DNA from: Octopus bimaculoides
Taxonomy: Eukaryota
Assembly (NCBI RefSeq): GCF_001194135.2
Contig: NC_068982.1
Coordinates: forward strand, 158,195,838 to 158,251,461
Length of the DNA: 55,624 nt
Direction of reading: 5' to 3'
A model generated the notes under the pieces. The model did no database searches. It was not told the origin of the DNA and saw only the letters and a program-made list of their open reading frames with translations. Both the position numbers and the translations under genes were made by a program. Each line of letters begins with the position of its first letter. The stretch's first letter is position 1. Shown piece after piece: positions 12,702-37,066 of this stretch.

Positions 12702-12748
<47 letters not shown>

Positions 12749-13540
12749 CCTATATATATATATGCATTTATACACAGACATATTTATATGCATATATATG
12801 TATACGTGCACACAAATATAGCGTTCGCAGTTTCTTGGCGCTATGATGAATCTCTTGAGCTAAGTAAAGGTTAACAGTTTATCCATAAAAAAACGTAACA
12901 TAAAATACATTAGAAAAGTGAACACATCAACTTTCGCATTATTCTTCGTTCAGAGATGAAAATATCCTATCAGTCACACTGTCTGGGATGTCGATAGCAG
13001 TATTATACATAAGAGGTGATAAAAAATAACCATTTTAGATAAATATACTACGGCTTCTGCTGAATAAGTCCAGTTCCGTATTTTCATACTAGTCATTATA
13101 ATTAAGTCGTAGTGTACTTTAGTGCTAGGTCAAATGAATATAAACAGAAGGTAGTTTTTCCCATGATAGAAGACTTGTATTTGAAGATTAACATACTGCA
13201 CTTGAGTAGTATTTCTGAAATTTTCGATTGCGAATAAAAATTATAAAAATCAGGAGATCATTGTAATCTGTTATAAAGACGAAAGGCAACTGGAAGAATC
13301 GGAAGTGTACGAATGGAAATGAGAAGAAGAAAATCATAGAAAACAATAAGAAAAATAAGGTAAGTTAAAGTTCGAGATGCAAAAGGAGGTATCTATCACT
13401 TCCTTTCATTCCGATGTACAGTCTATATGTTTCTTTCGTATTTACATACGAAAAGAACACACACACAAACACACACACACACGCGCACACAGACACACAA
13501 ACACATACAGGTACTTACGTAGTAGATACACAAATATGGG

Positions 13541-13773
13541 AAAACTATCCCTCACTCTTCCCAGAATCCAGATCTTAATCCCTGTAATATTTGATCGTTT
13601 CCCAAGCTGAAAAAGATTCCCAGGTTCAGTCGTTTTGAACACATTGAAAAGATGGAGGCTGTGACAAGGGCCCTGGATACCTTCACTGTCAAGGACATGA
13701 GACATTCTCGAAGTGAATGAATTGCTACAACAAACGCATTGAGGTTAAGCGATACTACTTTGAAGGAGGTTAG
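13541..13773 (+). mobile_element. Mariner transposase C-terminal pseudogene fragment
   Basis: KTIPHSSQNPDLNPCNI*SFPKLKK...RFEHIEKMEAVTRALDTFT...(shift) YNKRIEVKRYYFEGG*, matching PPYSPDLAPCDFWLFPKLK...RF..IEE...YFEGD. Confidence 0.85.
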
Positions 13774-14128
13774 AGTATTGTATTGCTTTGCGATTAATAA
13801 ACGTCTCTCTCTAGCTCTTACTGACTTTATATGTAAATATACATATATGTATACATAAAAATTTTTTAAATACATGTTTTTCATATCATCCGCCAACAAA
13901 TACTCAATTTCAGTATCATTAGAAAGTCATCGGCTATACACATATCTCAATAATTTTGAAAGATATCATTCAAGATATTGCTTGTTTTTGCATTGCCTAA
14001 GTAACTGTGAGTGAGAAGGCAAAGTGATTTCTTCTCCAGTAAGCTACATTCTTTTAAATTAATGGGAAATGTTGGGATTTAACATAGAGTGACGTGTAGA
14101 TCAATTGAAGTTCATAAATATGAATTTG

Positions 14129-15610
14129 GACACAAGGCCAGCAATTTTGGAGGAGGGAGTAAGTCGATTATATCGGCCTCAAAGTTCAACTACCACTTAT
14201 TTTAACCACTCAGAAAGAATGAAAAGTAAAGTTGACCTCAGGAGGTAAAGACGGGTAAAATGCAAACACGCATTTCGCCCGGCGTCACCTTAATTCTTTG
14301 ACAAAATTCATATTTCTGTCGTAGGTGACGTTTTGTATGACATGGCTTCTTTCCTTATTATTTTGGTTGCAATTTAACCAATGCAGCTAATTATGTCTAA
14401 GATTGATAAATAATAAACTATAAAGTTACTTCAAAGTCATACTTTGCTTTCTATATCGATATTTTGCAGTAATATTTTGTCATATCATCTATAAGCTCAG
14501 AATTGTTTCTTCAAATTCCTTCAATTTCTTTTATGTAGTGAAATATGGAACAACTTAGCAATTATGAGGAACTTTGATTAATTCCATTTTGTCAGCGAAA
14601 GTAAACTAGGTACACTTCAAACGCCATATTTTCGCATGCATTTCTGATTTTAAGCAATCATGTATTACTAACAAGACGTTATTACCAATGTCAATGAAAT
14701 TAGCAAGAATTCCACTCTCTGAATTTCTGTCGCCTTTCGAATTAAGAACCTCCTGAGAATGAAAGACTCTAGCATGTCTTATGAAAGTTAAGAAAATCAC
14801 ATCGGTTCTAAAGATGTTAACTTATATATAAAAAAGAAATAAATGAAATATTTCTCTGAATTACACAGATTTAATAACACCTTCAGATTGCATTATAGCA
14901 TGTAGATAGACATAGAATTGACACGAACTCAGCTCATCCCACTTTTGAATCAGGTAAATATCCAGGATGCAACCGGTGCATACTATAAGTCAGAAATGCA
15001 CGAAATACTTGACTGGTACATTTTTATCGACCCCGAAATGATTAAATCCAATTTAGCTGCCTTACCACCCTTGTAATAATGACATTGATTTCTAACATTG
15101 ACTCAGTTCTACACAGTTGTGTGGTGCAATATAATCGATTTTATCGATTCTAGTAAAAAAAGGATATTTGATCGAAACCTGAATAACGAAAAGCAAAGTC
15201 AACTTTGGTGGAACCTGCAATCTGAATGCACAGAGATGTTACTAAATACTATAAGGCATTGACAAGCTCTTCAACAATTCTACCAACGTTCTCACAATAG
15301 TAAAAAAAATTAAATTAGGCTCCGGTCCGGAAATTTGTGGGTATATGAGTAGTGGATGAATGTGTTCTAGAACCTGATTAGTACATCATTTTATCGACCT
15401 GGGAAGGATGAAATGTTAGATCTTAAATGAGGTATACGGGGATTTTCAATCATGTCAACCATTCTACTTTTATATTTTTCGATATTTTTCGACCTTAGAA
15501 AAGTGAATGATAAAGTCGACCTTCGTAGCAATTGAACTCAGAACGTAATGAGCAGCCAATAAATAACAAATGGAATTTTATGAGAAGGCTTACCGATCCT
15601 GTCAGTGTCA
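14129..15610 (-). mobile_element. Cluster of about five degenerate fragments of the SINE family seen intact at 22508-22745
   Basis: Recurring motifs aagtcgattatatcg, tttatcgaccccgaa, aaagt(c/t)gacct, gaactcagaacgtaa and catttcgcccggcgt are reverse complements of the intact copy. Confidence 0.6.
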
Positions 15611-18479
15611 TCGTAATAGTAATAGTTGTTCACTTTGGCACCAAGTCACCAAAACTTTGCAATGGTCTGTTAAGTGAATCCCAGACAGATGAAAAGCAAT
15701 AATGGCCACTGCAGGATACGAACCTTAACAAATAGCTCAAGATATTTTTCATACGCTCTACCGATTTTGCCAATGCCATTGAAATATTAAAGTATGAAGA
15801 ATAAACAAAAGAATACGAAAATGTTGGAACAAGAATGAAATACGAGAAAATAATACAGCTGGATGCAAAATGAGCAGCTTGACACAAACTACAGAGAAGA
15901 AAGGGTGCAATATCTTATGAAATGAGGCAAAGGTTGAATGTTTTCAAAGATCATAACATCTAAAGAGTTTCTTGAAGGAAGAAACGAAAGAGAAAGGAAA
16001 TGAGAGGCAAATTTTAACTATCGAAAAATTAACGTTTATTGTTATTTCAAGAATTGCTATAATGCCGGTCAGTATCGATGGGAAGGAATGTAAAGTAATC
16101 GCTTTTGTTGGAATGTTTTTTTTTTTTACCTCTTCATATTCTTCGTAAATCTTTTCTTTGAAATCACTATAATTGCAAGTGAATAGTAATGCCTCTTAAT
16201 GTAATGTATTAAGAAAATCATTGACTGTAATCGTTTCGATTATTTTTCAAACCCAATCTACAAGATTCTTGCTGATTGAACCATTATTAACAATGAGAAT
16301 GATTAAGTGAAGTAGCCAATATTGATTAATTTACAGAGAAGAAAACAAATTTGGACATATTGTTCAATTAATTGACCTGAACCAGTTACTGGTACTCATT
16401 ACTACGTGTACCATAAGACTGTGAAAATCATTAAAATTGTGCTAAAATGTACAAGAAATATGCTTCTATAAAGTCTTTCCGGTTGTTGACTCAATAAAGA
16501 AAATCATTCTAAATATGGCCGTTTCGTATTCCTGACTAGCATTACGTAATGCATATTCTTACTTTTTGAATAAGTAACCTAAAGGCATTTAGCAAGGGTT
16601 AATGCTTTCTTCATATGACTGAAATGTAAATATGCTGAAATATGATGAGATATAAATAGGCCTGTTTCTTACAATGTACTATCCATTTATAGGAAATTTG
16701 AAGCTGAGAATATTTGACATTTGTAGATTCCCACACGGATGCAATAGGTCGTATGTATATTGAGTTGGAAGGTCCATGCTACTAATAATTTAGGTCTGTG
16801 TAATAGAACAACAACTGAATATAATCTAAGTTAGATATTCACTTTTGATAACGTAGCTTTATTCATCAATGTTGCTAATGCACATGTCCCCTAATATGTA
16901 TATAACATCACAACTCTTAGAAATGAAAGCTTTCATTTAATATGTTCAAATTTTTTGGGAGGGGGGAGGCTTTTCAAACTAATCAAAACTCAAGGGATTT
17001 CATTTAGCGTGTGTTTGTTTTTATCATTTAATTTTCATTTGTTTTTTTTTTTATCATAGTGTGTTTAATGAAAACGTCTACAGTTATATCTAAAATGAGG
17101 GCATGTGCACATCACGGATTTAATCGCATTAATTTAGACATGTTTAATAATAACTGTTGAATTTTTCAAAAGATTTAATGGCACAGCTTAAAATTACAAA
17201 CTACTGCCATCTTACTTTTCCGTATTTTTGAGTGATATTATTCGCATATTTTCAATGATAGAGTGTAATGTTGCTGATTGGGTTAAATCAAGTCTTACAA
17301 ATCATGCTGTTTTCTCTGTTGTGTTTATTGTTTAATGACTAAATGTTTACTGCACGTGAGTTGGATATGTGTACATTTACAGCGAGGACAATCGGTTTAT
17401 TTCTATTATACAATGCGGAGCTGCTTTTCATATCCCGTTTGTCATTTGCTTAAGTTCAGGTTTCTACTGGTATTAATGCCGTTTCAATTAAATTTTATGG
17501 CAGTTTTTCGTTTGATAAAGTATATATTTACGTCAAAGTTTTCTGGATATCAAATATAAACGTTAAATACATTAATCTTTGTTCATGAAGTTTATGTAAA
17601 GTGAATGTTTCGAGTAATACATCTACTTGACGTTAACTTACTCTTGTGCAAATTTCTCCTAATGGAAGAGGAAAACATTTTATTCATAATTGTCATATAG
17701 GGCTATATATTTATATTTTAAAACCGTGGTAAAATGTTTGAGTTAGAATTTCATTGTTCTTTCATGCGTAGTTCTTATTGATGATAGAAGTAAAGTTACC
17801 CAAAATGGAATTTATGGAGCTTCCTGTTGAGTGTTGATTTTTGAAAAAAATAAAATAAATAAATGAAAAAAGAGCTGTTTGTGAGTCAAATATTTCCTTC
17901 CAAGGTTAAACTAAAAGCTCTGCTTCCTGAATCATGCAATATTAAAAATAAAATAAAGTAAAAATAACAAAGGATAATGAAATAAATAACAAAAACAAGT
18001 AACGAAAGAGTAGCATAGAAAAGAAAACAGTAATCAATCTTATATACATGCGAGATAGAATACCACATATTGTAACGGAAATTTAAATTCAATCTTAAAT
18101 ACAAACAAGACTGTATACATTAAGTGAATTGTAGAAGTCAAATGCGCCGATAAAACAGAAAAAGGAGAATGTTATTGAAGCCGTTTAAAAGTAAATCTCG
18201 CTACGGTAGCTTAAGTACATAAATTTTTGTATATATATAATATAAAATAATTATTACATGCATACACACACTCACGTATGGAAATCGTAAAATTTTGGTG
18301 TTATTTATTCAACATTACAGGAGTTTCATCTGCTAATAGGAACTAGAAAGTTTTACTGTTAAATAAGCATGTAAGGAATTTCCTATTCGAAGCAGAAGGA
18401 ATATACCCACCTACCTACACAATATATACATCATGAACATTCCAGTCGTTAGACGACGCATACGGGTTCTGCACAGGTG

Positions 18480-18620
18480 CACGATATATGTCACGTGTCA
18501 GAAACGAGATGCTAGCAGGGCAACGTGAAATGAAACGTTTTGCACAAGAAGGACAACGTAACACCCAGTCATGGAATCGAAATCACGATCTCGTAAGTGC
18601 AACACCCTAACCATGAAGCC
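18480..18620 (-). mobile_element. tRNA-derived SINE head (same family as 44005-44280)
   Basis: Reverse complement atggttagggtgttgcac...tttcgattcc...ccttcttgtgcaaaac has A/B-box-like motifs and aligns to 44005-44110. Confidence 0.6.
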
Positions 18621-18681
18621 ATACGTCTTCACAATATATATATATATATATATATGTTTGTATGTGTGTGTGTATGTGTGT

Positions 18682-18778
<97 letters not shown>

Positions 18779-19328
18779 TTCTGAAGCTCAAAGAGGAAAA
18801 AGCTACGTTTTGACTGGTATTTCAAACTGCTGGCAGAGGTATGTCACATAGAACGTATAGTAATGAAAGCTTCACGTTAGACAATCTAACAATTCTTCCA
18901 AAACACTGTCCTTGGCGAGTTCGCTGTTTATCGATCCACAAATTATGAAAAACAATGGTGACGCCACGAAGTAGGAGTGAGTACAGAGAAATTTGGAATA
19001 AATACCGTGAAACTTTGTATCCAACAATGTAAGGATCCTGACTAATTACTACCGTTATGCCCCCCCCCCCCCNNNNNNNNNNNNNNNNNNNNACACACAC
19101 ACACACACATACACACACACATATATATCCGTATATATGAATGTAAGATCTAGGAATCGAGTTGTCGGAAGAAAAAGAAAGTTAACTTCAAGCAATCCGT
19201 AATAAATATAATAAAACAACTTTCAGGGACAGTAGTGGTTTATTGAGGCGGAAGGTTGTGGATAAGTTATTTATATATTCCACGGTAGGTGAATGGGGTT
19301 GCTGGGTGTGCGAATAAGGATACAAGAA

Positions 19329-19599
19329 TTATGGAATGGAGTAGGTAAGATCCGGGCTACATCTGTTTCATAGGGAGTTGAACCTCAGAAGTGGCAAAAA
19401 TCCAAGTGAGGTGTATACTACCGGTTGCTCTTCAGGCATGTCTTTTTAGCTCGTCTTCGTTGTAACCATAAATTTTATCAAGATATCCTTGGACTGAAAA
19501 GTAGCCGATGGTATTCACCTCCCTTGGATTTTTATCACTTCTGAGGTCCTCTCGCTGCGAAATATATGCAGCTCAGATCTTACCTACTCCATTCCGTAA
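19329..19599. repeat. Diverged ~107-bp inverted repeat (MITE-like hairpin)
   Basis: Arms 19329-19435 and 19494-19599 share about 80% identity by manual alignment; loop ~58 nt. Confidence 0.9.
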
Positions 19600-19665
19600 C
19601 TATATATATATATATATATTGGAAGGTTTGGAGGTGATGTACAGAAATTATATAGAAAAAAAAAT

Positions 19666-19834
19666 TAAGGTACTCAGAAATCTGGATGTTTGTACATTTA
19701 TAGATTTTTATTAATGTCACATGTTTTATAAATTAAATAAAGCGCTTTTCACCTAATCGTTATTTAATTTATAAAACATGTGACATTAATAAAAATCTGT
19801 AAATGTACAAACATCCAGATTTCTGAGTACCTTA
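19666..19834. repeat. Near-perfect 75-bp inverted repeat
   Basis: 19666-19740 versus the reverse complement of 19760-19834 is 74/75 identical with a 19-nt loop; the right arm ends at an N-gap. Confidence 0.92.
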
Positions 19835-19898
19835 NNNNNNNNNNNNNNNNNNNNNNNNNNNNNNNNNNNNNNNNNNNNNNNNNNNNNNNNNNNNNNNN

Positions 19899-19933
<35 letters not shown>

Positions 19934-21330
19934 GTGTGTGTGTGTGAGTGTGTGTGTACATACGTATGGTGCAAAAGTTATGAATAATACGGAGACGAGC
20001 TAAAAAGACAGAGTGTATTAGTTTTACGCCCAGGAAAAATGAAAGGAAATGTATTTTCAGTTTCGAGCATACGATCTTCTACAGCAAGACTTGACGAGGA
20101 TATAAAACATGGGGAGAGAAAAGATCAAATGTGTCTCGAACGATCCCCGTGTACTAAAATGACCGAAGACGGAAAAGGACACCCGGGGTGTGAGTTGTAA
20201 TCAAGGAATTGTGGTTGGTGATATACCATTGCCACACATATACCTCATAGATAGATAGATAGATAGATAGAGAGATAGATAGATAGCCAGACGGATAGAC
20301 AGATACATACATTGGCTGTGAAGTCCCGCAGAGGTTACTCTCCAATTCAAGTTGAAATTATAGCAGAAATCACTGGATATTTGTACGCCTCGTAGGAGCA
20401 AGCCTATCATCCTGCTATTACAATCCAAACTTATTGATAACGTAGCCATTACATTTTTATATCCATAACATGTTGAAAGAAGAAACATTGTACATGCGGA
20501 CTCCAACCGACGGCTATAAGTAAAACGAAACGATTGATGCCAAATGCTACACAGCAGAATATATGAAATAATGGAGAAGTGAATAGAAAATGTCAATTAC
20601 GACAAATTTAGAACAATAGATTTCAAGAAGAAAAAATACGCCCCAATACTCAAGGAATAGTAGAAAATTTTCCGACATAGATTTACCTACTGGCATTTCA
20701 ATTGTAATTCATATTCTATACGTGAAATGGAAAGCATTTTATTTGCACAGTAAAATGCAAAATTTTTAAATGGAAGCTAACATATGAGAGACAGAAAATC
20801 CCTGGAAACAATGGAAAATATTTTTATAGAATTATTTTGCAACATCAAAAGCAAGCTAGAGGGAAAAGCGAATGATATCCTCATACAGATGAATATGTAC
20901 TCCCACTCTCACTAGAGGGGTACGTCTGTTAAGTGACTGAAGAATCCACATTACAACGCAAAATTTACGAGTTTTTGTATATAAATTAACGCACATCACA
21001 CACACACACACACACGCACGCACACACACACATACATTCATATATATATTCATATGCTTGCATATATATTCATACACATGTACACACATGCACGCATATA
21101 TACAATATTTCCTATGTATACAGTTAGATGTATTACTGCTATTGGTGAATTTAAAGGTTCCACATTGAACATCATTTTCCACTTCATTTCCAGCAAAGTG
21201 ATATGGCTGCTATTGTATTTAGTAGTATTGATGGTAATGATAGACAAAAGGAGTATGAAAAACAACTTAATGTAATAAAGTGTTACCTTGAAAAACCGTT
21301 GTGGATCTAAATCCCAATGCAATATGTAAA

Positions 21331-21379
21331 TCCACTGCAGGGGAAGCAAACAGCTACAATGTCGAAACGCGCGTATGGA
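21331..21379 (+). ncRNA. Degenerate minimal type-I hammerhead ribozyme-like motif
   Basis: tcca-CTGcagG-...-gtc-GAAA-cgcgcg-TA-tgga: helix I tcca/tgga, palindromic helix III ACGCGCGT and a GUA cleavage triplet. The CUGANGA box has two substitutions and helix II is poor. Confidence 0.45.
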
Positions 21380-21539
21380 ACAAATGCTATAAACTACATC
21401 TTGTATTTATCATACTCTTTAATCACACAATTTATCATACTCTTTAATCACACGATTATGAAATATGGAAACCAAACATAGGTACAACATGAAATAATTA
21501 AGTGCGATGCACAGACGAGTGGATAGGTTCCTGTTTAGT

Positions 21540-21735
21540 ATATTATGCTTATTTGTCTACTTTATTATATCCCCTTCTTCCTAGCTTCTCACCCTGTTTA
21601 TTTCTGTGTTCCTTTCTATCGAAGTGCGTAGGCTCGAAACGTAAAAGACTTTCTTACTTGCCGAGCATTAAACTAAGACATCTGTTTGTTGTTTGTACAC
21701 CCGTCTTCGTCTTTTGTTTCTTGAAAATTCTCACT
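21540..21735 (+). mobile_element. Probable PLE/retrozyme-derived terminal repeat carrying a degenerate hammerhead (21612-21647)
   Basis: cttt-ctatcga-a-gtgc-gtag-gctc-GAAA-cg-TA-aaag: helix I cttt/aaag, helix II g(t)gc/gctc, palindromic ACGT helix III. It is followed by a pyrimidine-rich tail ending in tatata. Confidence 0.5.
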
Positions 21736-22507
21736 ATATATATATGTGTGTGTGTGTGTGTAGTGGTAATGATTCCATGGTGACGAGCATACAATGAGTG
21801 AGGGTCATGGGAGAAGACGACCTAGCTGAATATAGTAAGTATTTGAATACTGAATGTACGTAAAATAATGTTTGCATGAATTGAAATGATCTCAGTTGGA
21901 GAAAGAATATACATAATAAAAATAAAATGATTAAAACATAAATAATGGAGTAAAACATATTCTCTAAATAATAAACCTGTGCATGCAGACAAATATAGAT
22001 ATACAGAGAAGGCTGCACAAACACACAATTTAATATCTACACATAAATGCGGATAGCCTGTATGCACAAAGACATACAAATTCAAGCATATATATACGTA
22101 CACACACACACACTGACACACATTCGCAGAATATCTCGATAACCCATCAGTCTTATATCTTAAATATTCACAGATTTTTTTCTTATTCATTGTTTATTTT
22201 CTTATCAAGATAACATATGTGTTCTGTGATCCTAATCATAAGAGCGACAGCAGAAGTTAAAGACACTGCTAAAATATAATGCTATGCTTATATTAAAATA
22301 AATATATATTATACAATATAATATACTTATATCAAAATAACTTTCATGAACTAGTTATCATATATATTATCATTAACCATTTCAAATATTTGAATATCAA
22401 CCGCATATACCAAAAGATATGTATATTTTTCGATTATTTTGAATCTGAACAAAAGAATGTGTGGAACTCCCATTCGTTCTGTCAAACGGCATTTGCAATT
22501 ATTCGAT

Positions 22508-22745
22508 CAGCAGCGAGCTAGCAGAATCGTTAGCACGCTGGGCGAAATGCTTAGCGGTATTTCGTCTGCCGTTACGTTCTGAGTTCAAGTTCCGCCGAGG
22601 TCGACTTTGCCTTTCATCCTTTCGGGGATCGATAAATTAAGTACCAGTTACGCACTGGGGTCGATGTAATCGACTTAATCCGTTCATCTGTCCTTGTTTG
22701 ATCCTTCTATGTTTAGCCCCTTGTGGGCAATAAAGAAATAAGAAT
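22508..22745 (+). mobile_element. Near-full-length tRNA-derived SINE
   Basis: A-box-like gctagcagaatcgtt, B-box-like gagttcaagttcc, body gtcgactttgcctttcatcctttcgggg...taagtaccagt and tail aataaagaaataagaa. Several eroded copies occur elsewhere in the window. The family name needs a Dfam/Repbase search. Confidence 0.9.
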
Positions 22746-22775
22746 TATTTACTGTGTTATATCTTTTATCAGATA

Positions 22776-22950
22776 CTGGCTTCAGTCATTGGACTACGGC
22801 CAAGCTGGGACACCGCTTTCTAAGGCTTTAAACGAACAACTCAACTCCAGTACTTATGCTATCTCATACTATTCTGGCACGTATTCTATCCGCCTCTTTT
22901 GCTGGACCGCTAGGTAACGGGGACATTAGCAAATAAGCTCCGTTTTTAAC
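22776..22950 (-). mobile_element. Eroded 3' part of the composite SINE family (cf. 27305-27852)
   Basis: ttcagtcattggactacggccaagctgg...caccgc...tattctatc...ctcttttgctggaccgctaggtaacggggac aligns to 27322-27455. Confidence 0.6.
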
Positions 22951-23124
22951 TTGTGATTAAGAGGTAAATTTCTTTTTTAGTTAATGATTTAGTCAGACAA
23001 TGAAGGACAGCGCCCTTGATGTTTCGCAGAGCCAACCAGATTATTCCGTGAAAGGGAAGCACGAATATTGGTCACATACGGAAAGTCGCCAAATGTTAAC
23101 AAGGGTGAAATGATTGTATTAATT

Positions 23125-23320
23125 CCTTTCTACAATAGGCACAAGACCTGAATTTTTGGGCAGGGGTTAGTCGATTACACCGACCCTACCGCTCCACGGG
23201 TACTTATTTCGTCGACTCCGAAAGGCAAATTAGACCTCCACGGAATGGGAACTCAGAATATAATACCGAAAAATCTGTCGCTAAACACTTGCCCGGCGCA
23301 TTAATAATGTTGGCGTTGAC
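23125..23320 (-). mobile_element. Diverged SINE copy inverted relative to 22508-22745
   Basis: Reverse complement gcgccgggcaagtgtttagcg...ttctgagttccc...ttgcctttcggagtcga...aaataagtacc...gtgtaatcgac aligns to the intact copy. Confidence 0.7.
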
Positions 23321-25014
23321 CGCTCTTATGGTAAAATTAGATAACGCATTTAAACTGAAAGTTAATTATAAGTGAATACCAAATTAAATAGAAAGCAAAT
23401 ATAAGTTGAATAAAAATATCAATATTCTTATATAAATATACTACTTATCACTGTACAAAAAAGCTATACTGTTAAGTATTCTGTATGGCAGACTAGATTA
23501 AATTAGCTCACTATGGTAATTAAAAATAAATATATTTTGTTTTATATCAATTAAGGTATTGGATCTGAAGTTCAAGGAATTGACCATTTTTAATGTTATA
23601 ATCAGGAAATGAGAGTAGAAAGTAGTATATAAAAAGTTTTAGATTCTAAATAAAATTCCATATAAAAAAAATATAATATCGATAAATTCCATTGGGAACA
23701 GAGTGTTGGAAATATAAAGATTAGACCAAGAGATAGTATTGAATTACAGTAATTTTCAAATATGCTTAAAATGTGAAAAGACCACACATAAAAGCTTATG
23801 GATCTTAGTTTAATCACATTTTCTAATTACACATCAAAATAGTCACTATCTCAATGAACTGTAATGAAACCTAAACAAAATGCACAACTATAAAGAAGCG
23901 TATACACATATGCATTGCCATACTAAAACGTATACAACCACACTCACACAGCTGTATACACGTATACACACACACATATATATATATGCACAAATACACA
24001 CACACACACATATACATATACATATATACATACATATATGTGTGTGTGTGTGTACATGTATATATGTGTGCATAGGTGCACGTGTGTATGTATGTATGTA
24101 TGTATGTGTGCGTATATGCGTACATATAATTAAGTATGAAGATTTTTATGATACGGTTTTTATCTATACAATATTGTTTGAAAGTGTATTTTTCATTAGC
24201 TATATGTAAGCATCTGAAGCCATAAAGTTTTATTGAAATTCTTCAAATCTTGACATGATTTCTTTACTGATGTTCTCCAAAATGAGAAAGAAGCAGACAA
24301 TAAAAACCTATGAAATAGCGTAGAAGAATAAAGAAGGAAAAAAAATAGGAGAAATATAAAAAGGGAAACGGAAGTAGGTCAGATGAAGAAAAGTTCTTTT
24401 TACAATCAGAGTTTAAAAAAATACAGCATCGTGAAGAAATTGCTTTAATATACAGCCACAACCACAACAACAACAACTGCGAAAATAAAAATTAAAACAA
24501 GAAATTATACTGGCTAACAATATTGCCTTACGTGGAAAACTTAAAGTCGGAACAAAATATTTTGTAAGGATTCCATTGTAACCGATTCTCTCTGAAAATA
24601 TCAGATTTCTCTGAATAAACTGAAGTCTATAATTTCAAACTAAGAACAAGAGTTAAGCAAATGGGACAGATATTTCTCGTTCTAAAATTAAAATTATTGT
24701 CACATCACCATGTATATTTTCAAAGTCACTTATGCTGTGGTAAATATTGTAGCTTTGAAATGTTTACGCGTAGGATAGAACGTCTGATTAATTAGTAATT
24801 AGTGTAATTAGTGAACGTAGATTGGCAGAAGCGGTAAAGAGCTGTACTGAATGGCTTGCAACAGTTAGGTACGTTTCTCTCCGATCTCAATCTACAATTA
24901 GCTTGTATCGAGCTTTGTATCATATCTTACACGAGAAAGTAAGTGAAATAAGGATGAGAAGCAATATCGTATTAGTACTCTTGCTAGAAGTAAATTCTAT
25001 CATATTTTGGCGCA

Positions 25015-25170
25015 AGACCTGTAATTTTAGGGATGAGTGTTAGTCGAATACATGAACCCCAATTCTTGACTGGTGCTTTATTTTATCGAACCCGAAAGGA
25101 TAAAAGGCAAAGTTGACCTCAGAACTTTATCTGTCGTGCTTCCAATTCTGTCAGCTCACCACTTTATTCC
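25015..25170 (-). mobile_element. Internally deleted SINE copy (22508 family)
   Basis: gactggtgctttattttatcgaacccgaaaggataaaaggcaaagttgacctc...ttctgtcagctcacc is the reverse complement of the body and head. Confidence 0.65.
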
Positions 25171-25315
25171 TGCAAGAAATAATGACCAAATCTTCAAAAT
25201 ATCCCGAGTTATTGTCTTAAAAAAAGAAAGGACAAACAGGATAGTGTAGTCTTTCAATATATTTCGTACATGTTGCTGTGTAGTTATCTCTTAGCCCTAA
25301 GTCAGCTAAAGGTTA

Positions 25316-25372
25316 AACAACAACAACAGCAGCAGCAGCAGTAGCAGCAGCAATAGCAACAACAACAACAGC
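25316..25372. repeat. Compound (CAA)n/(CAG)n trinucleotide tract
   Basis: aacaacaacaacagcagcagcagcagtagcagcagcaatagcaacaacaacaacagca; no coding context found. Confidence 0.9.
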
Positions 25373-26337
25373 AATATATCTAAAATACCGTCAAATTACA
25401 AGCTTACAATCTTCTGACCTGCTCCCAACGTCAGATTAATAATACTTTGTTTTGTTTGACATATACGTAAATCAAGGATTACAAATAGCAATGTCTTCGT
25501 GGAGAAAGCAGAGAGGAAAATCATCCATGTTTTATACAACTCCTAATGCGTCATGTATATACCATTATAAAATTGCAGAATGTGTTATAATGTATGAAAA
25601 CATCATGAGTATATAACAAAATGTTCTGAACTTCTGACAACATGTATTACATTATTGCGTTTCATTAGGTTCTTATTCCTATTCTTGTTGGGATTAATTG
25701 CAATTTCCATTCTTAGGAGACAAATCCTTTGGGAGGTTGTATTAACACTTTCCTCCACAAGGATATTTTACCTTTTACCTTTCATTATGTTTTCATATGA
25801 ATGGTGGCTTGCTTATTAGTTCCGTTATTTTCTATTTCTAAGTTTAGAATAGATTGGGGACGCTGTTATTTTTTACCACAAGGTCATACTTGATCGATCT
25901 GATATTTCATCATTTGTGCTCCTGTCATTTCATCTCATTGTTTCTGTCTTCTATCAAGGACTTCATATTCAAATATGTAGAACTAGAGTAACAGTTGATA
26001 GGGATGCAGCCGCTAAATCCAGCAGGTCGAGCGTCTGCATACAATTTCTTTCTTTGATGACAAATAATACTCATAATATAACCAAAACAATAAAACTCAT
26101 ACTAAGTTCGATTTTGTTATCCCTCCAGCGACTTTAATATATAAAAGTAGTAGATAATCGTTTGCAGGGTCACAGATTAATTCATCTCTACTCTTCTGAA
26201 ATATGGGAATTTGTATGCCAAGGTACAAACTAATAAGAAGCATAATCTGAGACATACGGTTATGCTATTTTGAGTGAAGTTTCAGATTTTCTAGAAGTAA
26301 TTCATTTAGCCAAACGCGATTTTATTTTCTTAAACCG

Positions 26338-26383
<46 letters not shown>

Positions 26384-26692
26384 CTAGGGGAATACAAACT
26401 AAGACAACAAATACAGAGTAANNNNNNNNNNNNNNNNNNNNNNNNNNNNNNNNNNNNNNNNNNNNNNNNNNNNNNNNNNNNNNNNNNNNNNNNNNNNNNN
26501 NNNNNNNNNNNNNNNNNNNNNNNNNNNNNNNNNNNNNNNNNNNNNNNNNNNNNNNNNNNNNNNNNNNNGGGTGAGAGAGAGGGGGTCAGAGTGAGAAGTG
26601 ACAGAGAAAGAGAAAATTACGAAGATTTACAACACCAATTATACATACATACACATGCACACATACACACACACACACAGACACACGCACAG

Positions 26693-26727
<35 letters not shown>

Positions 26728-26849
26728 TACATATATATACAAAGTATGTGCGTATAAAAGTATAGAGCTACATATACACACATATATATACAATTATACA
26801 AAACATATAAGACTGTGTGTATTGATATATCTATATATATATATGTGTG

Positions 26850-26909
<60 letters not shown>

Positions 26910-27304
26910 ACGTTTGAATGGCTATGTTTATATACACGTGCACACACACATACACACGCACACATATATACAGAGACCATGGTTTGGTGTGTATATGCAT
27001 ATGTTAACCAAGTGAATAGAAAGACAATGAGAAATCTCCTGATATTTAGCAGCGTAGAAAATGTTCTTACCAATCAATTATTAGAAAAACATATTGATCT
27101 TGTGATGAAAAGTAAATAAGTTAATTGTAGTTGTCCTTTAAACTAACAAAAACAAGTAGCCGTATTGAGCGAATCTCATTTGTAGTTCGATAAATGAAAA
27201 CAGACAAAAATATTCATTGAGGCATTTCAAAATTACAAGGATTTTAATTCATGCTAGTATTTCTATACTAAATTGTTACAATAAAGTAGAAGAGAATATA
27301 TTAT

Positions 27305-27852
27305 GTTTACTCTTTTACTTGTTTCAGTCATTTGACTGTGGCTATGCTGGAGCATCGCCTTTATTCAAGCAAATCGACCCAAGGACTTATTCTTTGTAAG
27401 CTTAGTACTTATTCTATCGGTCTCTTTTCCCCAACCGCTAAGTTACGGGGACGTAAACACACCAGAATCGGTTGTCAAGCGATGTTGGGGGGGACAAACA
27501 CAGACACACAAACATATACACACGCGCGTATATATATATATATATATNNNNNNNNNNNNNNNNNNNNNNNNNNNNNNNNNNNNNNNNNNNNNNNNNNNNN
27601 NNNNNNNNNNNNNNNNNNNNNNNNNNNNNNNNNNNNNNNNNNNNNNNNTATATATTTATATATATATATATACATACATGTATAAGATGAGCCTCTTTCA
27701 GTTTCCGTCTACCAAATCCAATCACAAAGCTTTGGTCGTCGGCCCGAGGCAATAGTACAAGACACTTGCTCAAGATGCCACGCAGTGGGACTGAACGCGG
27801 AACAATGTGGTTCGTAAGGAAGCTACTTACCACACACCCACTCCTACGCCTA
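27305..27852 (-). mobile_element. Composite tRNA-derived SINE with a central microsatellite
   Basis: Head at 27852-27690 (reverse complement gtgtggtaagtagcttcc...gttcagtcccactgcgtggc...gacggaaactgaaag), central (TA)/(TG) tract with a gap, and 3' body ending gactgaaacaagtaaaagagtaaa. The same layout occurs at 38195-38985. Confidence 0.9.
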
Positions 27853-28119
27853 TAGAAAAAATATGGAACGCTTCACGAATCTGCGTGTCACCTGGGTTTT
27901 TCTTGAACTGCTAAGTGTTTTTTATTCAGCCTAATGACAGAAACGAGAATAGCAGTATCAATGATATTTTCCTACTTTTAGAGCTCTTGAAAGAATGATG
28001 AGGTTTCGTTAGAGAAGGAACGATAGCGTTTATGCATGTTTTTTATGCCTCTAAGATTGGAAGCAGAAAAGGAAAACATGTAGCTGCACAAGAAAGAAAG
28101 TCAGCTCAAATGTTTTCAA

Positions 28120-28290
28120 CATAGTAGACTTCTCAAAGGGTACATACAGTTTCTATTGAACAAACTAGTCACAGAAATTTCTGCCGACCTGAGGTTGTGG
28201 TAAAAGATCATACTTAACCAAAATGCTAAACAATGTGGTCAATGCTATCGAAGTGGAAGCATTTGCTTGTAAACTAAACTTCCTAATCAC
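28120..28290 (-). mobile_element. Highly eroded head of the composite SINE family
   Basis: cagtttcta...gtaaaagatcatactt...gaagc...ttcctaatcacacagcc loosely parallels 27700-27840. Confidence 0.4.
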
Positions 28291-29334
28291 ACAGCCAAAC
28301 TCGTACCCAAGCTGTACAATGAATATAATCATTAACATCTCTGGATTTTGTCATAGGCAATTAATTCAGCCCTAAAGATATTTTCAATAGTTGTGTTGTA
28401 GCTTCCAACAACTGTTCAACATGAAAAAAGCTGAAGTAGTTTTATGAGCAAAACGAATAGAAAAATAGTCCATTTATTAAACCAGTGAATTACATTATAT
28501 GGAAAATATTCGTTCATTCAATAGATACAAAGGCTGATTGTCAGAATATTTGAATATACCTTTTTAAATGGTTGCATGAAATGTTTCAAACAACTTTGCA
28601 TCGAAATTTCAGTGGTAAAATCTAACATAAAGAATATCAATGGTTAATCACACTTAAGCAATCAATGATTAAGGTTCAATATGGTCGTTCAAGTTATTTA
28701 GAAATATCAGACAAGTTCACTCATACAGCAACGTAGCAACTTAAAAGGTATATAAACGTTAGAAGATACGAACTTGGTTAAACTCTATCTGAAAAAAAAA
28801 CCAAACAAAAAAAAAAACAGAAAGGGCAAATCTGGAACGCAGTTGATCATAGATCTACTAAATAAGGATAACCTAGTGTACAACAGCATTAAGTAATATG
28901 GAGTATATTAACGGTAGCCGAATCTATTTAAAACACTAGGTTGCCATGAGCCTATAGAAAGATCTTGTCAATGAATCTGATCGTAAAAGCAATGGAAGTC
29001 TAGAATTATTGTTGTTGTTGTTATTTAACTCTATGTTGTCTGAAGATATCTACTTACAAAAAGCTCTAGCTGTTGCGATGAGGTCTTCCCGTTTAACATT
29101 GATTATTATTTCTAGTTGACCAAACGGCTGTATAGACTTTCTAAAGTTGCTGTAATGAAGTGTTAAGGTTATAAATGTAACGTTTTGTTGGAAGAATCTG
29201 TATGAAAATTACCCATTTACACAGAAAATGAACTGTGGAGAGGCTTGGGTGACAATAGCATTGAGAGCAGGCGAATGAAGCGTTGCAGGTAACCTTTTCT
29301 AGCTCAACAGATAACCAACAGATATAGGCGAGAG

Positions 29335-29443
<109 letters not shown>

Positions 29444-30420
29444 AGGGATTTTCATGCTAAATAATGATGAAAGCTTTTTCTTTTAAGGCAAAGAAATATT
29501 AGTGCATGAACTTGCAGGAAAAAGATCTCTTGAAATTCTGACACAACAAGCTTGGGTAACATTTATTTGGTGAAAGGAGATGCTTCTTTTCTCTATAAAT
29601 TTTGAAATGCTGGTGGTGAGAGAACTGGGTCTGCAGTGGGGAGAATATTTAATCTATTACTAGCAATTTACATTTCGACACGTCAAAATTACAAACGCTA
29701 GAGCAAGGAACTAAATATCCAAAATCTTGATGGCGTAGGTGTACGCCACTAGTCAGCTAGTAATTGCTAGTGGTTGCCAAGACAACTCGTGTAGGAATCC
29801 GGGTTAATCAGAAATGCAAATGAATAGCACAGGATGGAAGATACTCTGGATCTAGTAAAGACAAATAACTGTGCGTTCTACTGACCCATTAAAAAACGGA
29901 AGATTAATTATTGACTGCAAGAACCAATGCTTATAGAGTTCTGTTCAATGCAAATCAATTTCTGCAAAAGTTAATGAATTCTACACATGCGAAGACTGAG
30001 ACAAGTAATTCTGTTTAAATATAGCATATTGATATGGAACTGGGTATGGAGATAGTAGAAAGCGCCATTGATTTTTAATAAATTCCACAAAGTTAAGCCT
30101 TTGACCGAGATTAATTTTCCAGTTGAGCCGATTATTTCATTAATTTCTGAAACATCGATTTTACTCAATAACCCGGAAAGTGGTAGGTGCTATCAGACAC
30201 ACTTGCTCCCAACATGCTTCACGAAGACGAAATCACTGATGGTGTCTGAAGAATAATTAAATGCAGCAGAACATTATCATTATAGAAGTGATGGTTGAGG
30301 AAATACAATGATGCGATAGACACTTTAACTGCATGTAGGTCGACATCCTATTATCAGCATTCCGCAACATATCTAGAATAATTTGTTCAATCGTTCATCC
30401 ATGTTTCAAAGCTTTCACTG

Positions 30421-30470
<50 letters not shown>

Positions 30471-30534
30471 ATATATGTATATACATATATATAAAACATA
30501 TATATATATACATACACCTATATATAACACAAAC

Positions 30535-30660
30535 CTACCTACGTGCCTGACTACCTACCTACCTATCTACCTACCTACCTACCTACCAACCTACCTACCT
30601 ACCTACCTACCTACCTACCTACTTACATAATACATACATACATACATACATAATACATAC
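30535..30660. repeat. (CCTA)n then (CATA)n tetranucleotide microsatellites
   Basis: Directly visible acctacctacct...acatacatac. Confidence 0.9.
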
Positions 30661-32478
30661 ATACACCACACAACTATATGCAAACAGATAAAATGGAATA
30701 AGTTATTTTCCTATAAAAATTGCCTTAATACATAGTCAAAAATGTTCAGCATTTTGATTTTCGAAATCCATAATTCCTGCAGCTTGATTCTAGTGATAAT
30801 ATTTTCTTGGTTTCTTTCTTATTTTATCAATAAATTTCAAAAATGAGCATATACATATTTATTTGCAGACACACTGGCTGGGTTAATGTATGTTCTCTGT
30901 AATTAGGACTTCCACGTATTGATTGGCATCTCCATTATGTACATGTTTACTGAGAACGACTACATTATATCAATTCACACATATACAATTACATTTCCAT
31001 ATTTATCTCATCATAAAGAATTATATACACTTTGTGCAACGAATTAAGTCCTACGCTAACTGTTCAACGCTGAATACATTTGTCAAAAGCTGCGAAAGTA
31101 AAAACAGATGTATAATATCTGGATTTAGTCTGTTATATTTAAAATATAGCTTCGAATGAGAGTGATCTATCACTACCGAACTAGAAAAACCACAAGTTAC
31201 AAAAATGAATATGAAGCGTACATGAACGACGAAATTACACCCCCTGGCACGTACTGGAATATATAGCTCAACACATATTTACACAAAAAGTATATATACG
31301 AGCGACAATTAACAATTGTGTGACTGAGTTTATGAATATACACATAGAGAAGCATCGTCAGAAGTAGGGATATACGCATGCATACATATACACCCCTACA
31401 CACACATATATCTGGTACACAAGCATACACACAAGCACACACACACACTCACACACGCATATGCCTATGCATATATATATATATATATATATNNNNNNNN
31501 NNNNNNNNNNNNNNNNNNNNNNNNNNNNNNNNNNNNNNNNNNNNNNNNNNNNNNNNNNNNNNNNNNNNNNNNNNNNNNNNNNNNNNNNNNNNNNNNNNNN
31601 NNNNNNNNNNNNNNNNNNNNNNNNNNNNNNNNNNNNNNNNNNNNNNNNNNNNNNNNNNNNNNNNNNNNNNNNNNNNNNNNNNNNNNNNNNNNNNNNNNNN
31701 NNNNNNNNNNNNNNNNNNNNNNNNNNNNNNNNNNNNNNNNNNNNNNNNNNNNNNNNNNNNNNNNNNNNNNNNNNNNNNNNNNNNNNNNNNNNNNNNNNNN
31801 NNNNNNNNNNNNNNNNNNNNNNNNNNNNNNNNNNNNNNNNNNNNNNNNNNNNNNNNNNNNNNNNNNNNNNNNNNNNNNNNNNNNNNNNNNNNNNNNNNNN
31901 NNNNNNNNNNNNNNNNNNNNNNNNNNNNNNNNNNNNNNNNNNNNNNNNNNNNNNNNNNNNNNNNNNNNNNNNNNNNNNNNNNNNNNNNNNNNNNNNNNNN
32001 NNNNNNNNNNNNNNNNNNNNNNNNNNNNNNNNNNNNNNNNNNNNNNNNNNNNNNNNNNNNNNNNNNNNNNNNNNNNNNNNNNNNNNNNNNNNNNNNNNNN
32101 NNNNNNNNNNNNNNNNNNNNNNNNNNNNNNNNNNNNNNNNNNNNNNNNNNNNNNNNNNNNNNNNNNNNNNNNNNNNNNNNNNNNNNNNNNNNNNNNNNNN
32201 NNNNNNNNNNNNNNNNNNNNNNNNNNNNNNNNNNNNNNNNNNNNNNNNNNNNNNNNNNNNNNNNNNNNNNNNNNNNNNNNNNNNNNNNNNNNNNNNNNNN
32301 NNNNNNNNNNNNNNNNNNNNNNNNNNNNNNNNNNNNNNNNNNNNNNNNNNNNNNNNNNNNNNNNNNNNNNNNNNNNNNNNNNNNNNNNNNNNNNNNNNNN
32401 NNNNNNNNNNNNNNNNNNNNNNNNNNNNNNNNNNNNNNNNNNNNNNNNNNNNNNNNNNNNNNNNNNNNNNNNNNNNNN

Positions 32479-32542
<64 letters not shown>

Positions 32543-32841
32543 CACACACACACAAATGTATGTGCGTATTTACGAAATGCAGTTATGTCCTGCGCTATCT
32601 GTGATATTACTCAGTCTAACATACAGAAATATATAACAAAGTAAATTCACACACAGACGTGTGCGTGCGTACATACACATGTATATAAACATATATTTGT
32701 ACAAATGTACATATGTTTCTACAGATATATATATATATATATATATGTGCATGTGTGTGTAGGTATGTGTGTATATCTATATATCTATCTATCTATCTAT
32801 CTATCTATCTAACTGTCTGTCTTTATACGTGTATGCATACT

Positions 32842-32958
<117 letters not shown>

Positions 32959-34758
32959 TGATAGGCAAACTCCTACGTATGTTACTAGGTAGAGAGGTAA
33001 GTATGTAATAAGGAACTCGAACAGAAAAGAAAAATACCCTTATGCAAGTGTTTCGACCCTTAACTCCATACAATCTAATGGGGCTGAGCAGCATCCAGAT
33101 CATGACTCCTGGATACCCATTTATATTGGGCCTTGCACCTTCCAGGTTTGTTAGGCCCCATAAATCCGAGATTGACTTGGATATTATAACATCTTCAAGC
33201 TGTGACACAATGATGTTTCCTTTCCATCTTCGTGGACTAGATCCTGTTGGAAACATTTTCAGCTGTTTTTTGCGATTGCCTTTAGAGATCTGGTCCTCTT
33301 TATCCTAGAAATTCAGAGCCATTAGATTAAATTATATGCAAGTTTGCTCCAGACACCTTGTATCCACCTCTATGGCGAAGACATTCGTTTAGAATTTATA
33401 TTCTTTGAAAGTATTGACTGAAACGGCAGTCATGTAGATCTTGTAAATAACGTTTCGTAAATAAGATCAATACTGTTGCACTTGTATATTTTTCCTAGTG
33501 TAATGTAAGGTAAATGGGATATAAAAATGTATAGTGAATAAATGTTTGGATGATTTGAGAGCTGCCCAAAAAAGATCTTAAATGACTTTTTTGTACCACG
33601 AATGCTTACGTATATAAATATATAAATACTTACAGACATATATACATTTTTCAAGGATATTGATACGCATCCATAAATATATACATATATTCACTCTTGC
33701 GCATACACACATATATATAGACACATGGATATGAACATATCTATCTATCTAAAATTAAAGGATAGGAGTTTACATATCCGATCGCCTAAAATACATTTAG
33801 CGTTATCAAAGGTCCAATAGGATATATATAAAAAATCCAACTGTTTCAAAATACTTTCGACCTTCAATACTTGCAACATAAATACATGTAAGGTATAACA
33901 ATAGTTGGGGCAAACACACTTTTAACACCATTTTAAAATTTAAAGAATTACTTGTTTTGCAAAGCAGAGTAAAAGAATGAAAACACACTTTTTAAATGCA
34001 TTTTGTTTACGAATTTCGATCGAGTAACTTGACTGATTTAACACTGATATTTCGAACAGGATAAACTCATACATAAGTTGCATATATAGAATATTACATT
34101 TATATACAGTGTGAGGGACATATCTGATGAATACATTATCACATTTAAAGTTGATATATATTTGGAATATGTAATGATTTTAATTCTATGATAAACAGCT
34201 GCAAAGTGGAATGCATATGGAAAAAACGAAAATATATCATATGTAATAACAAAATTTAATTTTGCGCAACAGTTAAATTTCGTTGTAGTGTGAGATACAT
34301 TAGAATCCAACTAGTTAAGTAATACATGTTCATACACACATACACGCACCTATAATAATAAAACTAAGCATGTATAAAAAAATATGTGTGTGTGTAAGTA
34401 TATACATATATATGCATATATATATATTCAAAATTTAAGTTAGTTGAAATATGTTTGTCACATATTTCAGCTGCTAAAGACAAATACACTGCAGTTACCG
34501 TGGAGAAAAATTCTCTCTTATGGTGAAAAGGTGTGAAAACATCCCATTCGTTCAGTGTCACCCTCTCTCGGGAATCTGAGACATCGATGTTTTGAGTTTG
34601 TTGAATCTTGTCGATCAGATGTACCTGAGATGGGAAACCCTGAACGAACTGACAAAGCTAATAGCTTTATATACAATTCAGCCAACACATTGACTGATTT
34701 GCGCTAGTAGATCTCCCGATCGAGAACAATATCGGATATATATATATANNNNNNNNNN

Positions 34759-34811
<53 letters not shown>

Positions 34812-35720
34812 TGAGACAGTAGTGGCCAACGGAGGCACCTCAAAGAAAACCAAAATAGTGACCGGTGTTCCACAGAGCATTGTATTGGGACCACTGCTTT
34901 TCGTACTGGGCCCCTGAGATATGCCCCCAGCTGCCCGGGTAGCCACTCTTGCTAGCTATGCAGTTGATACGAAAGTCTTGCAGAAAATGCAGAAGTGCAG
35001 CGATGTTGCACTCCTGCAGCAGAAATTGGACTGCATTTACAGATGGGCTGAGGACAACAATATGCAGTTTAATGCTAAAAAAATCCAAACCCTACGCTAC
35101 CACCGTCCAAAACTGGTATACAACTTACTTGAACACTGGTCCACAGGAGATTACAATGCCAGAGCCTAAATCACTGAGGGACTTGGGAATCGACATGAGT
35201 GATGATGCCTATTTCGATTGTGCACATTACCAGGATTGCCGCAAAGTGCAGACGACTTGCTGGATGGATCTTGAGAGCATTCAGAACAAGAGAGAGGGAA
35301 ACCATATTGGTCCTCTGGAGGACGTTCATCTTGGAGGACGTTCGTCTTGGAGGACGTTCGTCTTGGAGGACGCTCGTCCTGCTCCTAGCTATTGTCACCC
35401 AACAGAGTAAAATTAACAGCGTACCTTGAAGCAATCCAGCGATGTTTCACAAAAAATATCATCTCGTTGTAAAAGCTACTTGGAAAGGCTGAAGCAGCTA
35501 AGATCCCACCTCCTGGAGCGAAGGTGAGAGAGGTATGCAGAAATATACATCTGGAAGATCCTTGAAGGAATTGTACCAAATTTTGGCACTCAAATCTACA
35601 CCAGTGCCAGAACAGGTTAACACTGCACAGTGGCAAAGATTCCAACAATGCCACCGCACTTCAGGACCAGTTACATGACTTATTTGGAGTTAGAATTTCT
35701 AATCTCTTTACTCATCTATA
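34812..35720 (+). mobile_element. CR1/L2-group LINE reverse-transcriptase remnant
   Basis: VVANGGTSKKTKIVTGVPQSIVLGPLLFVL..DMP...SYAVDTKV...LQQKLDCIYRWAEDNNMQFNAKK, matching GVPQG.VLGPLLF, YADD and W..NNM.FN..K. Later frames give LRDLGIDMSDD and GWILRAFRTR; several stops and frameshifts. Confidence 0.9.
35316..35379 (+). repeat. Four copies of a 16-bp tandem repeat (TGGAGGACGTTCGTCT) inside the LINE
   Basis: Units start at 35316, 35332, 35348 and 35364, with at most two mismatches each. Confidence 0.95.
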
Positions 35721-36519
35721 GAGGGAACGTCTCTAAAAACCTTTCTCACTAATATTTTCAAATAACCGTTATGGCCTTTAGTTTTAGTTAATACCTAACT
35801 AGACTCACACATATCGTTCTATCTCATAAGGATAAATATGAATCTCCTACACTCTCTTCTGCTTTTTTTCTTTCTTAAGTGCTTTGTAAAAAAATTTCTT
35901 TATACTTCTTGCACTGAATAGTGCAGTGTTATATAATTTATTTAATTTAATCTAATTAATTTAATTAATTCTATTCAACCAAGCATTTGCATGAATTTTA
36001 TATCGCTGTACGAAATGATCGTCTGCATGAATTAAAATTCTCTTATATATATTAAGACCTTCTTTTGTCCATCTAAAAAAAAATTGTTGAGTTTTATAGG
36101 ATCTCTTTCCGTAAATTCACAAGACACCATATACAAGTATTATTTTCATATTCGCAATTTTACGCCGGTAAGCTATCAGGAAAATATGAAGAATCTATAT
36201 TAGAAATCATTTGGAAACCTCCAAATTAAAAGACGAACCTAATTCAACCTTTTTACACACACACACACACCCTTTTTACACACACACACACACACANNNN
36301 NNNNNNNNNNNNNNNNNNNNNNNNNNNNNNNNNNNNNNNNNNNNNNNNNNNNNNNNNNNNNNNNNNNNNNNNNNNNNNNNNNNNNNNNNNNNNNNNNNNN
36401 NNNNNNNNNNNNNNNNNNNNNNNNNNNNNNNNNNNNNNNNNNNNNNNNNNNNNNNNNNNNNNNNNNNNNNNNNNNNNNNNNNNNNNNNNNNNNNNNNNNN
36501 NNNNNNNNNNNNNNNNNNN

Positions 36520-36556
<37 letters not shown>

Positions 36557-36885
36557 ATATATATATATATGTATACATATATATACACACTCATTTATAT
36601 GTATATATACGCACATATGCGTACTTATATATACATATATACATATGTATATACATGTATACCTACACACACACGCATATATGTGTGTGTGCGTGTGTGT
36701 GTGTGTGTGTGTGTACACACATAGATATGGATACGATTCTGTATACCGACAAGTGTGTCAATATACTGTGTATGAACTTGTGTGTATGAAATTGCGTATG
36801 CGCGTGCATGTGTTTTTTTGTGTAAGTGAGTACATGTGCCGTTGTGGATATAAATGCAAAAGTAGCTTAGAACACGTACAGTCAC

Positions 36886-37066
36886 CTTGCCGCATCAACG
36901 AGCTGACAGTAAACCAGAGGCTGTTGAGAATTGTAAATTGGTTCTCCACTACATCAGAATCTGGGTTGCAAGGATGTGGGTTATACCATTCATAAGGACT
37001 GAAGCGAGCTAGTACGAACAGCATAAAACTGACGCACAAGTAAGCTGCTACCACATATACCCAAAC
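36886..37066 (-). CDS. GRIK2: Kainate-type ionotropic glutamate receptor exon: M1, intracellular loop and M2 pore loop including the Q/R site
   Basis: Acceptor tttctgtttccag|GTT at 37067/37066 and donor CAA G|gtgact at 36886/36885; 181 nt, phase 0 in and phase 1 out. Encodes [60 protein letters not shown](G); [23 protein letters not shown] matches vertebrate GluK2 as I recall it. Confidence 0.97.

Follow-up and report, generated by a model that had tools for sequence, protein, structure and literature searches.

A kainate receptor gene of Octopus bimaculoides encodes in its DNA the pore arginine that vertebrates obtain by RNA editing. The codon was found in a stretch of 55,624 nucleotides (hereafter the window; contig NC_068982.1, positions 158,195,838 to 158,251,461) that holds two exons of the octopod orthologue of a single molluscan GluK2-like kainate-receptor lineage. 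As the best explanation we propose that this octopod subunit combines a hard-wired Arg at the Q/R site with an Asp-Cys insertion in the selectivity filter, with channel effects that would follow by analogy with better-studied receptors, and we put the probability of this reading, all its parts taken jointly, at about 0.7. The genomic CGG would have arisen from an ancestral CAG by one A-to-G transition in the cephalopod lineage, and comes together with a 6-nt shift of the splice donor that inserted Asp-Cys into the selectivity filter; each copy of the octopus subunit is therefore made in the form that vertebrates reach by editing. The features concerned, all on the minus strand, were as follows.

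36880..37066 (-): exon for M1 and the M2 pore loop, 187 nt (VWVYVV...SLMRQGD and the first base of Cys), whose spliced translation is that of octopod RefSeq proteins.
36890..36892 (-): CGG (Arg) at the Q/R site, placed by the reading frame, the alignment to GluK2 Q621 and the annotated proteins.
36880..36885 (-): GTGACT, the old 5' splice site, now exonic; it reads GTGAGT in the nearest non-cephalopod relative.
36874..36879 (-): GTACGT, the 5' splice site in use, 6 nt downstream of the ancestral one, which reproduces GDCCEF.
2640..36879 (-): intron of about 34.2 kb, its length approximate owing to the 11 N-runs inside it.
2422..2639 (-): M3 exon, 218 nt, which completes the selectivity filter and continues through M3 and its SYTANLAAF gate into the first part of S2 (...TMTFFK), placed by ORF scan and alignment.

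By every sequence criterion tested, the subunit encoded in the window is a kainate-type iGluR. The window peptide matched the Pfam family Lig_chan (PF00060, E = 8e-44), with M1, re-entrant M2 and M3 with its SYTANLAAF motif all present, and the peptide of the two exons resembled GluK1-3 more than it did AMPA, delta or NMDA subunits (bit scores of 224 for GluK2, 211 for GluK3 and 186 for GluK5, and at most 175 for GluA1-4). The full architecture of ATD, S1, channel and S2 was seen in the O. bimaculoides orthologue at full length, a protein that matches the window exons exactly and carries ANF_receptor, Lig_chan-Glu_bd, Lig_chan and SBP_bac_3 domains. Protein searches used five tandem copies of the window peptide as the query, with full-length proteins ranked by their pore region. 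The best match was one 90%-identity cluster of octopod proteins (O. sinensis XP_036354915.1, O. bimaculoides XP_014777584.2 and XP_014777586.2, O. vulgaris CAI9717871.1 and Argonauta hians GAB1598890.1), all of them named 'glutamate receptor ionotropic, kainate 2(-like)'. P0179, the top match among cluster representatives, proved to be a chimeric model from an arthropod and was dropped as an orthologue. The initial annotation of this DNA had supposed a probable cephalopod, and the spliced peptide is indeed that of octopod RefSeq proteins.

Positions 36890-36892 read ccg on the plus strand, giving CGG (Arg) on the minus strand in the context ...TCG TTG ATG CGG CAA GGT GAC T/gtacgtgttc, where the slash marks the splice junction. 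The frame containing this codon was open over 36884-37075 (-), with a translation that starts CFQ, while the other two frames held stops throughout the M1-M2 exon. When the two-exon peptide was compared with PDB chains using phmmer, it aligned without gaps to GluK2 residues 563-695 (top match 5kuf_A, E = 4.9e-66, 224 bits; numbering taken from 9c5y_A, E = 2.5e-65). Query residue 59 (R) fell on Q621, the Q/R site of GluK2, and the DNA therefore has an Arg codon at the position aligned with GluA2 Q586 and GluK2 Q621. In the annotated proteins the residue is R636 (O. bimaculoides XP_014777586.2) or R625 (its isoform X2 and O. sinensis XP_036354915.1). The initial annotation had read a minus-strand CGG at these positions within M-R-Q-G, a reading borne out by the strand and the open frame, and had conceded that it would fail if Arg lay off the Q/R position, which the gapless alignment answers by placing Arg on Q621. 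Its view of the Arg as constitutive and genomic agrees with the gene models of four octopod species, all of which encode Arg.

The exon at 36880-37066, joined to 2422-2639, gave a translation identical to the octopod proteins. Its acceptor AG lies at 37068-37067 (-). The M3 exon, about 34 kb downstream on the same strand, was located by a stop-to-stop ORF scan and is bounded by an acceptor AG at 2641-2640 and a donor GT at 2421-2420 (-). The intron between the two sits where vertebrate GluK2 also has an intron, immediately behind its Q/R exon. A tblastn comparison of the full-length octopus protein with the window recovered just these two exons of the gene, and no upstream S1 exon was found between 37.1 and 55.6 kb of the window. 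The intron upstream of the M1-M2 exon contained broken ORFs at 44424-45489 (-) with a weak RVT_1 match (E = 5e-4, below the Pfam cut-off), and these fragments are probably a decayed retroelement.

The end of the M1-M2 exon differs from that first proposed. The initial annotation closed the exon after M-R-Q-G (CAA G), but it runs 6 nt further, to 36880. An exon end at CAA G/GTGACT was rejected because the annotated proteins and the Sepia transcripts need the downstream donor: only the GTACGT junction gives GDCCEF as found in both. The exonised GTGACT and the first two bases of the next exon make up the inserted Asp-Cys, and the selectivity filter reads MRQGDCCEF here as against MQQGCE in relatives. 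In the closest non-cephalopod relative found in genomic DNA (L001, positions 3196-3215) the same region reads CTC ATG CAG CAA G/gtgagt. From this comparison, the ancestral donor lost its +5 G in the cephalopod lineage (GTGAGT to GTGACT) and became exon, with splicing moved 6 nt downstream and, as a consequence of that shift, two residues (Asp-Cys) added to the filter. The insertion shifts the conserved acidic residue from +4 to +6, leaving Asp at +3 and Cys at +4 and +5. The pore as first pictured was thus right about Arg at the Q/R position and missed the Asp-Cys directly after R-Q-G. Because the insertion displaces the conserved +4 acidic residue, the predicted pore is not simply an edited GluK2 pore.

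Both features were conserved in the cephalopods for which we had sequences. The spliced window peptide was identical to the proteins of O. sinensis, O. bimaculoides, O. vulgaris and Argonauta hians, every octopod cluster member spanning the region had Arg and Asp-Cys, and four independently assembled octopod genomes agreed on Arg. A Sepia cluster of 12 transcriptome contigs, more than 99% identical to one another, had Arg and GDCC in 12 of 12. Nucleotides were read in one of these 12 contigs (L004, from run SRR20545814, a Sepia esculenta larval RNA-seq dataset; PMC9538352), where the Q/R codon was CGG, a reading of mRNA from which the genomic codon may differ. Arg thus occurs on either side of the split between octopods and decapodiforms, at the mRNA level at least. 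Over the two exons, L004 and the window shared 81% nucleotide identity with 4 amino-acid differences in 135, most nucleotide differences being synonymous, and the pairing of so much nucleotide change with so few residue changes indicates strong purifying selection on the M1-M3 segment. Protein identity between Octopus and Sepia was 93%, compared with 46-60% overall between octopus and other molluscan orthologues. The Asp-Cys insertion was kept in the four octopods and Sepia and was absent from every other relative inspected.

Two further observations concern the Sepia transcripts. A 19-nt stretch, TG ATG CGG CAA GGT GAC T (36880-36898, -), was identical in Octopus and L004 and spans the Q/R codon and the exonised old donor; elsewhere in these exons roughly half of the third codon positions differed between the two. 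This identity may reflect a constraint on splicing or RNA structure, or else chance (about 0.05). The 12 near-identical transcripts (L004; P0350, P0468-P0478) varied at 13 residues, 11 of which were of sense-strand A/G types (I/V, I/M, E/G, K/R, T/A, N/S). Four variable residues lay in the pore region, at Q/R-5 (FT[I/V]GS), at Q/R+6 (CC[E/G]F), just before SYTANLAAF (LIM[I/M]SSYTANL) and in TV[E/G]RM. The variation looks like RNA editing of the pore, with SNPs in pooled larvae as the alternative.

The Arg is derived. Gln was found in each of the 23 further relatives checked among molluscs, brachiopods and nemerteans, which read MQQG followed by CE, CD, SD or SE, with the insertion in none. The comparison covered a chiton (Liolophura), gastropods (Haliotis, Gigantopelta, Patella, Batillaria, Littorina, Nucella, Lymnaea, Biomphalaria, Bulinus, Physella, Aplysia GluR7 and Plakobranchus), bivalves (Solemya, Crassostrea, Mya, Mercenaria, Mactra and Ruditapes) and, as outgroups, Lingula, the nemertean Tubulanus and the nematode Plectus. 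In a neighbor-joining tree of full-length proteins the cephalopods were nested in one molluscan lineage, with the brachiopod and nemertean outside, a topology that fits the pattern expected of one orthologous lineage; its chiton, gastropod and bivalve members, and also Lingula and a nemertean, had MQQGCE. Since all non-cephalopod orthologues carry Gln, Arg arose in the cephalopod lineage after its split from other molluscs. An ancestral Arg across molluscs would, as the initial annotation acknowledged, have removed the novelty; the survey it called for returned Gln in every non-cephalopod orthologue and CAG in the closest genomic relative.

We also evaluated how often the Q/R position departs from Gln more widely. 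In a set of 173 homologous fragments, Gln stood at this position in 154, Arg in 11, Lys in 6 and His in 2, the Arg cases coming from an insect clade and from vertebrate-type genomic ORFs. Kainate-type exons in metagenome contigs, from 80 loci of diverse animals (L006-L085), gave 82 motif matches, all of them Gln (70 CAG and 12 CAA); CGG is one A-to-G transition from CAG. The editable codon, one step from Arg, was strongly preferred over CAA in these exons. Genomic Arg at this site is thus rare yet has precedent. Lys at the position (WFTVVTLMKQG) occurred in the kainate-type fragments P0117, P0125, P0129, P0131, P0133 and P0140, which form another group with a fixed positive charge at the pore tip.

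It is unlikely, but worth setting out, that the substitution had a history of editing: the cephalopod ancestor would have edited a genomic CAG almost fully through ADAR, octopods would later have fixed G, and decapodiforms may still edit CAG. Such a route fits the single step that separates CGG from CAG, the codon carried by the nearest relative and by 70 of the 82 genomic exon matches. It also fits the shared CGG at the Q/R site in Octopus and in Sepia mRNA, since two other Arg codons of these exons differ between the two (AGA vs CGT, AGA vs CGA). ADAR appears active on this mRNA in Sepia, with A/G-type recoding at 11 of 13 variable residues, and in coleoids edited adenines have been replaced by guanine more often than unedited ones (PMC7703385). 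Yet we found no evidence of editing at the Q/R site in any mollusc, and plain substitution accounts equally well for the data. No ECS-like duplex was detectable near the site in a 146-nt fold of the exon end and proximal intron, which folded no better than shuffles (z = +1.48), the intron as a whole being 34 kb long with 11 gaps. A longer fold of 441 nt (z = -6) was rejected as editing evidence, driven as it was by TG/CA and TA microsatellite hairpins. The genomic fragments searched contained no cephalopod ORFs, and the scan of metagenome contigs returned no match above 85% identity. The octopus subunit itself does not count among ADAR-edited Q/R sites, since a genomic CAG, which defines them, is missing: the genome has CGG and the octopod models Arg. 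Were the editing history true, GluA2 Q/R editing would have an independently evolved counterpart in protostomes, seen at two stages of its genetic assimilation and coupled to a selectivity filter lengthened by the exonised old donor.

For the hard-wired Arg and Asp-Cys reading preferred here, the consequences for the channel are drawn from other receptors. The Arg would place a fixed positive charge at a four-fold ring position at the tip of the M2 pore loop, and receptors with the octopus subunit would have lower Ca2+ permeability, relief from polyamine and philanthotoxin block, and a smaller unitary conductance. In GluA2 and GluK2, Arg at the Q/R site lowers Ca2+ permeability, abolishes polyamine block and reduces conductance (PMC12226733, PMC6307864). 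The effect extends to a kainate receptor of a protostome, as Drosophila KaiR1D is blocked by philanthotoxin whereas KaiR1D(Q604R) is not (Li et al. 2016, as described in a citing paper). By analogy with GluA2, GluK1, GluK2 and the fly KaiR1D(Q604R), low Ca2+ permeability, absence of polyamine block and low conductance would be expected, and the most likely role is that of a constitutive R subunit keeping Ca2+ permeability low and rectification linear in the heteromers that it joins, on the assumption of Gln-bearing octopus partner subunits. The Ca2+ impermeability of heteromers proposed in the initial annotation is likewise an extrapolation from vertebrate GluA2 and GluK2 and from the fly receptor. 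The Q/R site and the +4 acidic residue both govern polyamine block and Ca2+ permeation (PMC6307864). Vertebrate pore rules may not transfer to the octopus subunit, and its quantitative pore behaviour is not predictable because the Asp-Cys insertion moves the +4 acidic residue.

Such a change to the filter could go further than an edited pore. With Arg and a filter two residues longer, the channel might conduct very poorly, be anion-permeable like homomeric GluK2(R), or serve a purely modulatory role. The insertion separates the conserved acidic residue from the Q/R site; this position, its retention in octopods and Sepia and its absence there from every other relative inspected are in keeping with so divergent a pore, and in other iGluRs homotetramers with four Arg conduct poorly (PMC12226733). 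We nevertheless regard it as improbable, as the M2 helix, the SYTANLAAF gate and M3 are otherwise canonical and strongly constrained, and acidic residues remain near the filter (Asp at +3, Glu at +6).

The window as a whole had 30% G+C, abundant TG/CA and TC/GA microsatellites, and 17 N-runs, all in keeping with a draft octopus assembly. Two N-runs were of equal length, 446 nt (38436-38881 and 40583-41028), and a 195-nt exact direct repeat (40154-40348 and 41029-41223) abutted the second; together these are probably a scaffolding or gap-filling artefact. The notion that CGG is itself a sequencing or assembly error, a rare polymorphism or part of a pseudogene exon, which a gapped draft with a 195-nt exact duplicate near two equal-length N-runs might invite, is effectively refuted by Arg in the gene models of four octopod genomes and in 12 Sepia transcripts, by the intact splice sites of both exons and a protein identical to RefSeq models, and by nucleotide differences from Sepia that are mostly synonymous.

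In the literature searched we found no published account of the cephalopod Arg or of the Asp-Cys insertion, the sequences themselves being public in RefSeq; broad iGluR surveys discussed the Q/R position for other groups only, and an oyster iGluR paper was silent on it. The Q/R site is the classic example of RNA editing that is essential to function, and cephalopods are the heaviest recoders among animals. With Gln in all other molluscs examined and Arg in octopods and cuttlefish, the site offers a clean test of the trade-off between editing and genomic substitution, in a subunit with a selectivity filter that exceeds those of all other relatives examined by two residues. By analogy, the octopus subunit probably has an influence on Ca2+ permeability and rectification in receptors containing it, and the glutamate receptors concerned sit in brains used as learning models. 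The value of the finding is comparative and hypothesis-generating, and it establishes no new principle since the sequences are public and genomic Arg was found in other lineages.

Among known systems, vertebrate GluK2 (GRIK2) and GluK1 were close parallels. Identity over M1-M3 was 72-74% without gaps, with Arg on Q621, an intron of the same position and phase lies directly after Q-Q-G, and editing by ADAR2 gives the vertebrate mRNA the same CGG codon. Unlike these receptors, the octopus subunit has its Arg in DNA, which leaves neither a Q form nor any tuning through the extent of editing; it has two extra residues, Asp-Cys, after R-Q-G, and no ECS-like duplex was found near its site. Vertebrate GluA2 (GRIA2) has the homologous pore position, with Arg in essentially all of its protein, but belongs to the AMPA class (174 vs 224 bits) and gains its Arg from near-complete editing of CAG. 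GluA2(R) makes receptors poorly permeable to Ca2+ and low in conductance, with a linear I-V relation, and some fish GluA2 paralogues encode Arg genomically.

Other kainate-type subunits also have Arg in the genome at this position, and the octopus subunit belongs with this scattered set. An insect clade (WFITGTFLRQG; Bactrocera, Dendroctonus and others) has it, and a vertebrate-type GluK exon in GCA_977066275.1 reads ATG CGG CAA G/GTGAGT. The latter locus (L005, contig CDRUPQ010001914.1; proteins P0028, P0041 and P0052) includes in P0052 a sister ORF that has the same intron-encoded tail as the Arg locus but Gln at the site, and these look like closely related loci or paralogues differing by a hard-wired Q/R residue. 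The insect and vertebrate-type subunits with genomic Arg belong to independent lineages and do not have the Asp-Cys insertion. The molluscan orthologues (Aplysia GluR7, Lymnaea, Haliotis, Patella, Crassostrea GluK2 and others) fell in the same lineage of the neighbor-joining tree and shared 76-84% identity in M1-M3 (among the gastropods, chiton and Solemya listed) or 72% (Crassostrea cluster representative), as well as the Cys-Glu after Q-G; they differ in that all have Gln (MQQGCE) and none the insertion. Because these molluscan orthologues, which stand between the lineages with genomic Arg, have Gln, the lineages are independent and a hard-wired Arg at the Q/R site has arisen repeatedly.
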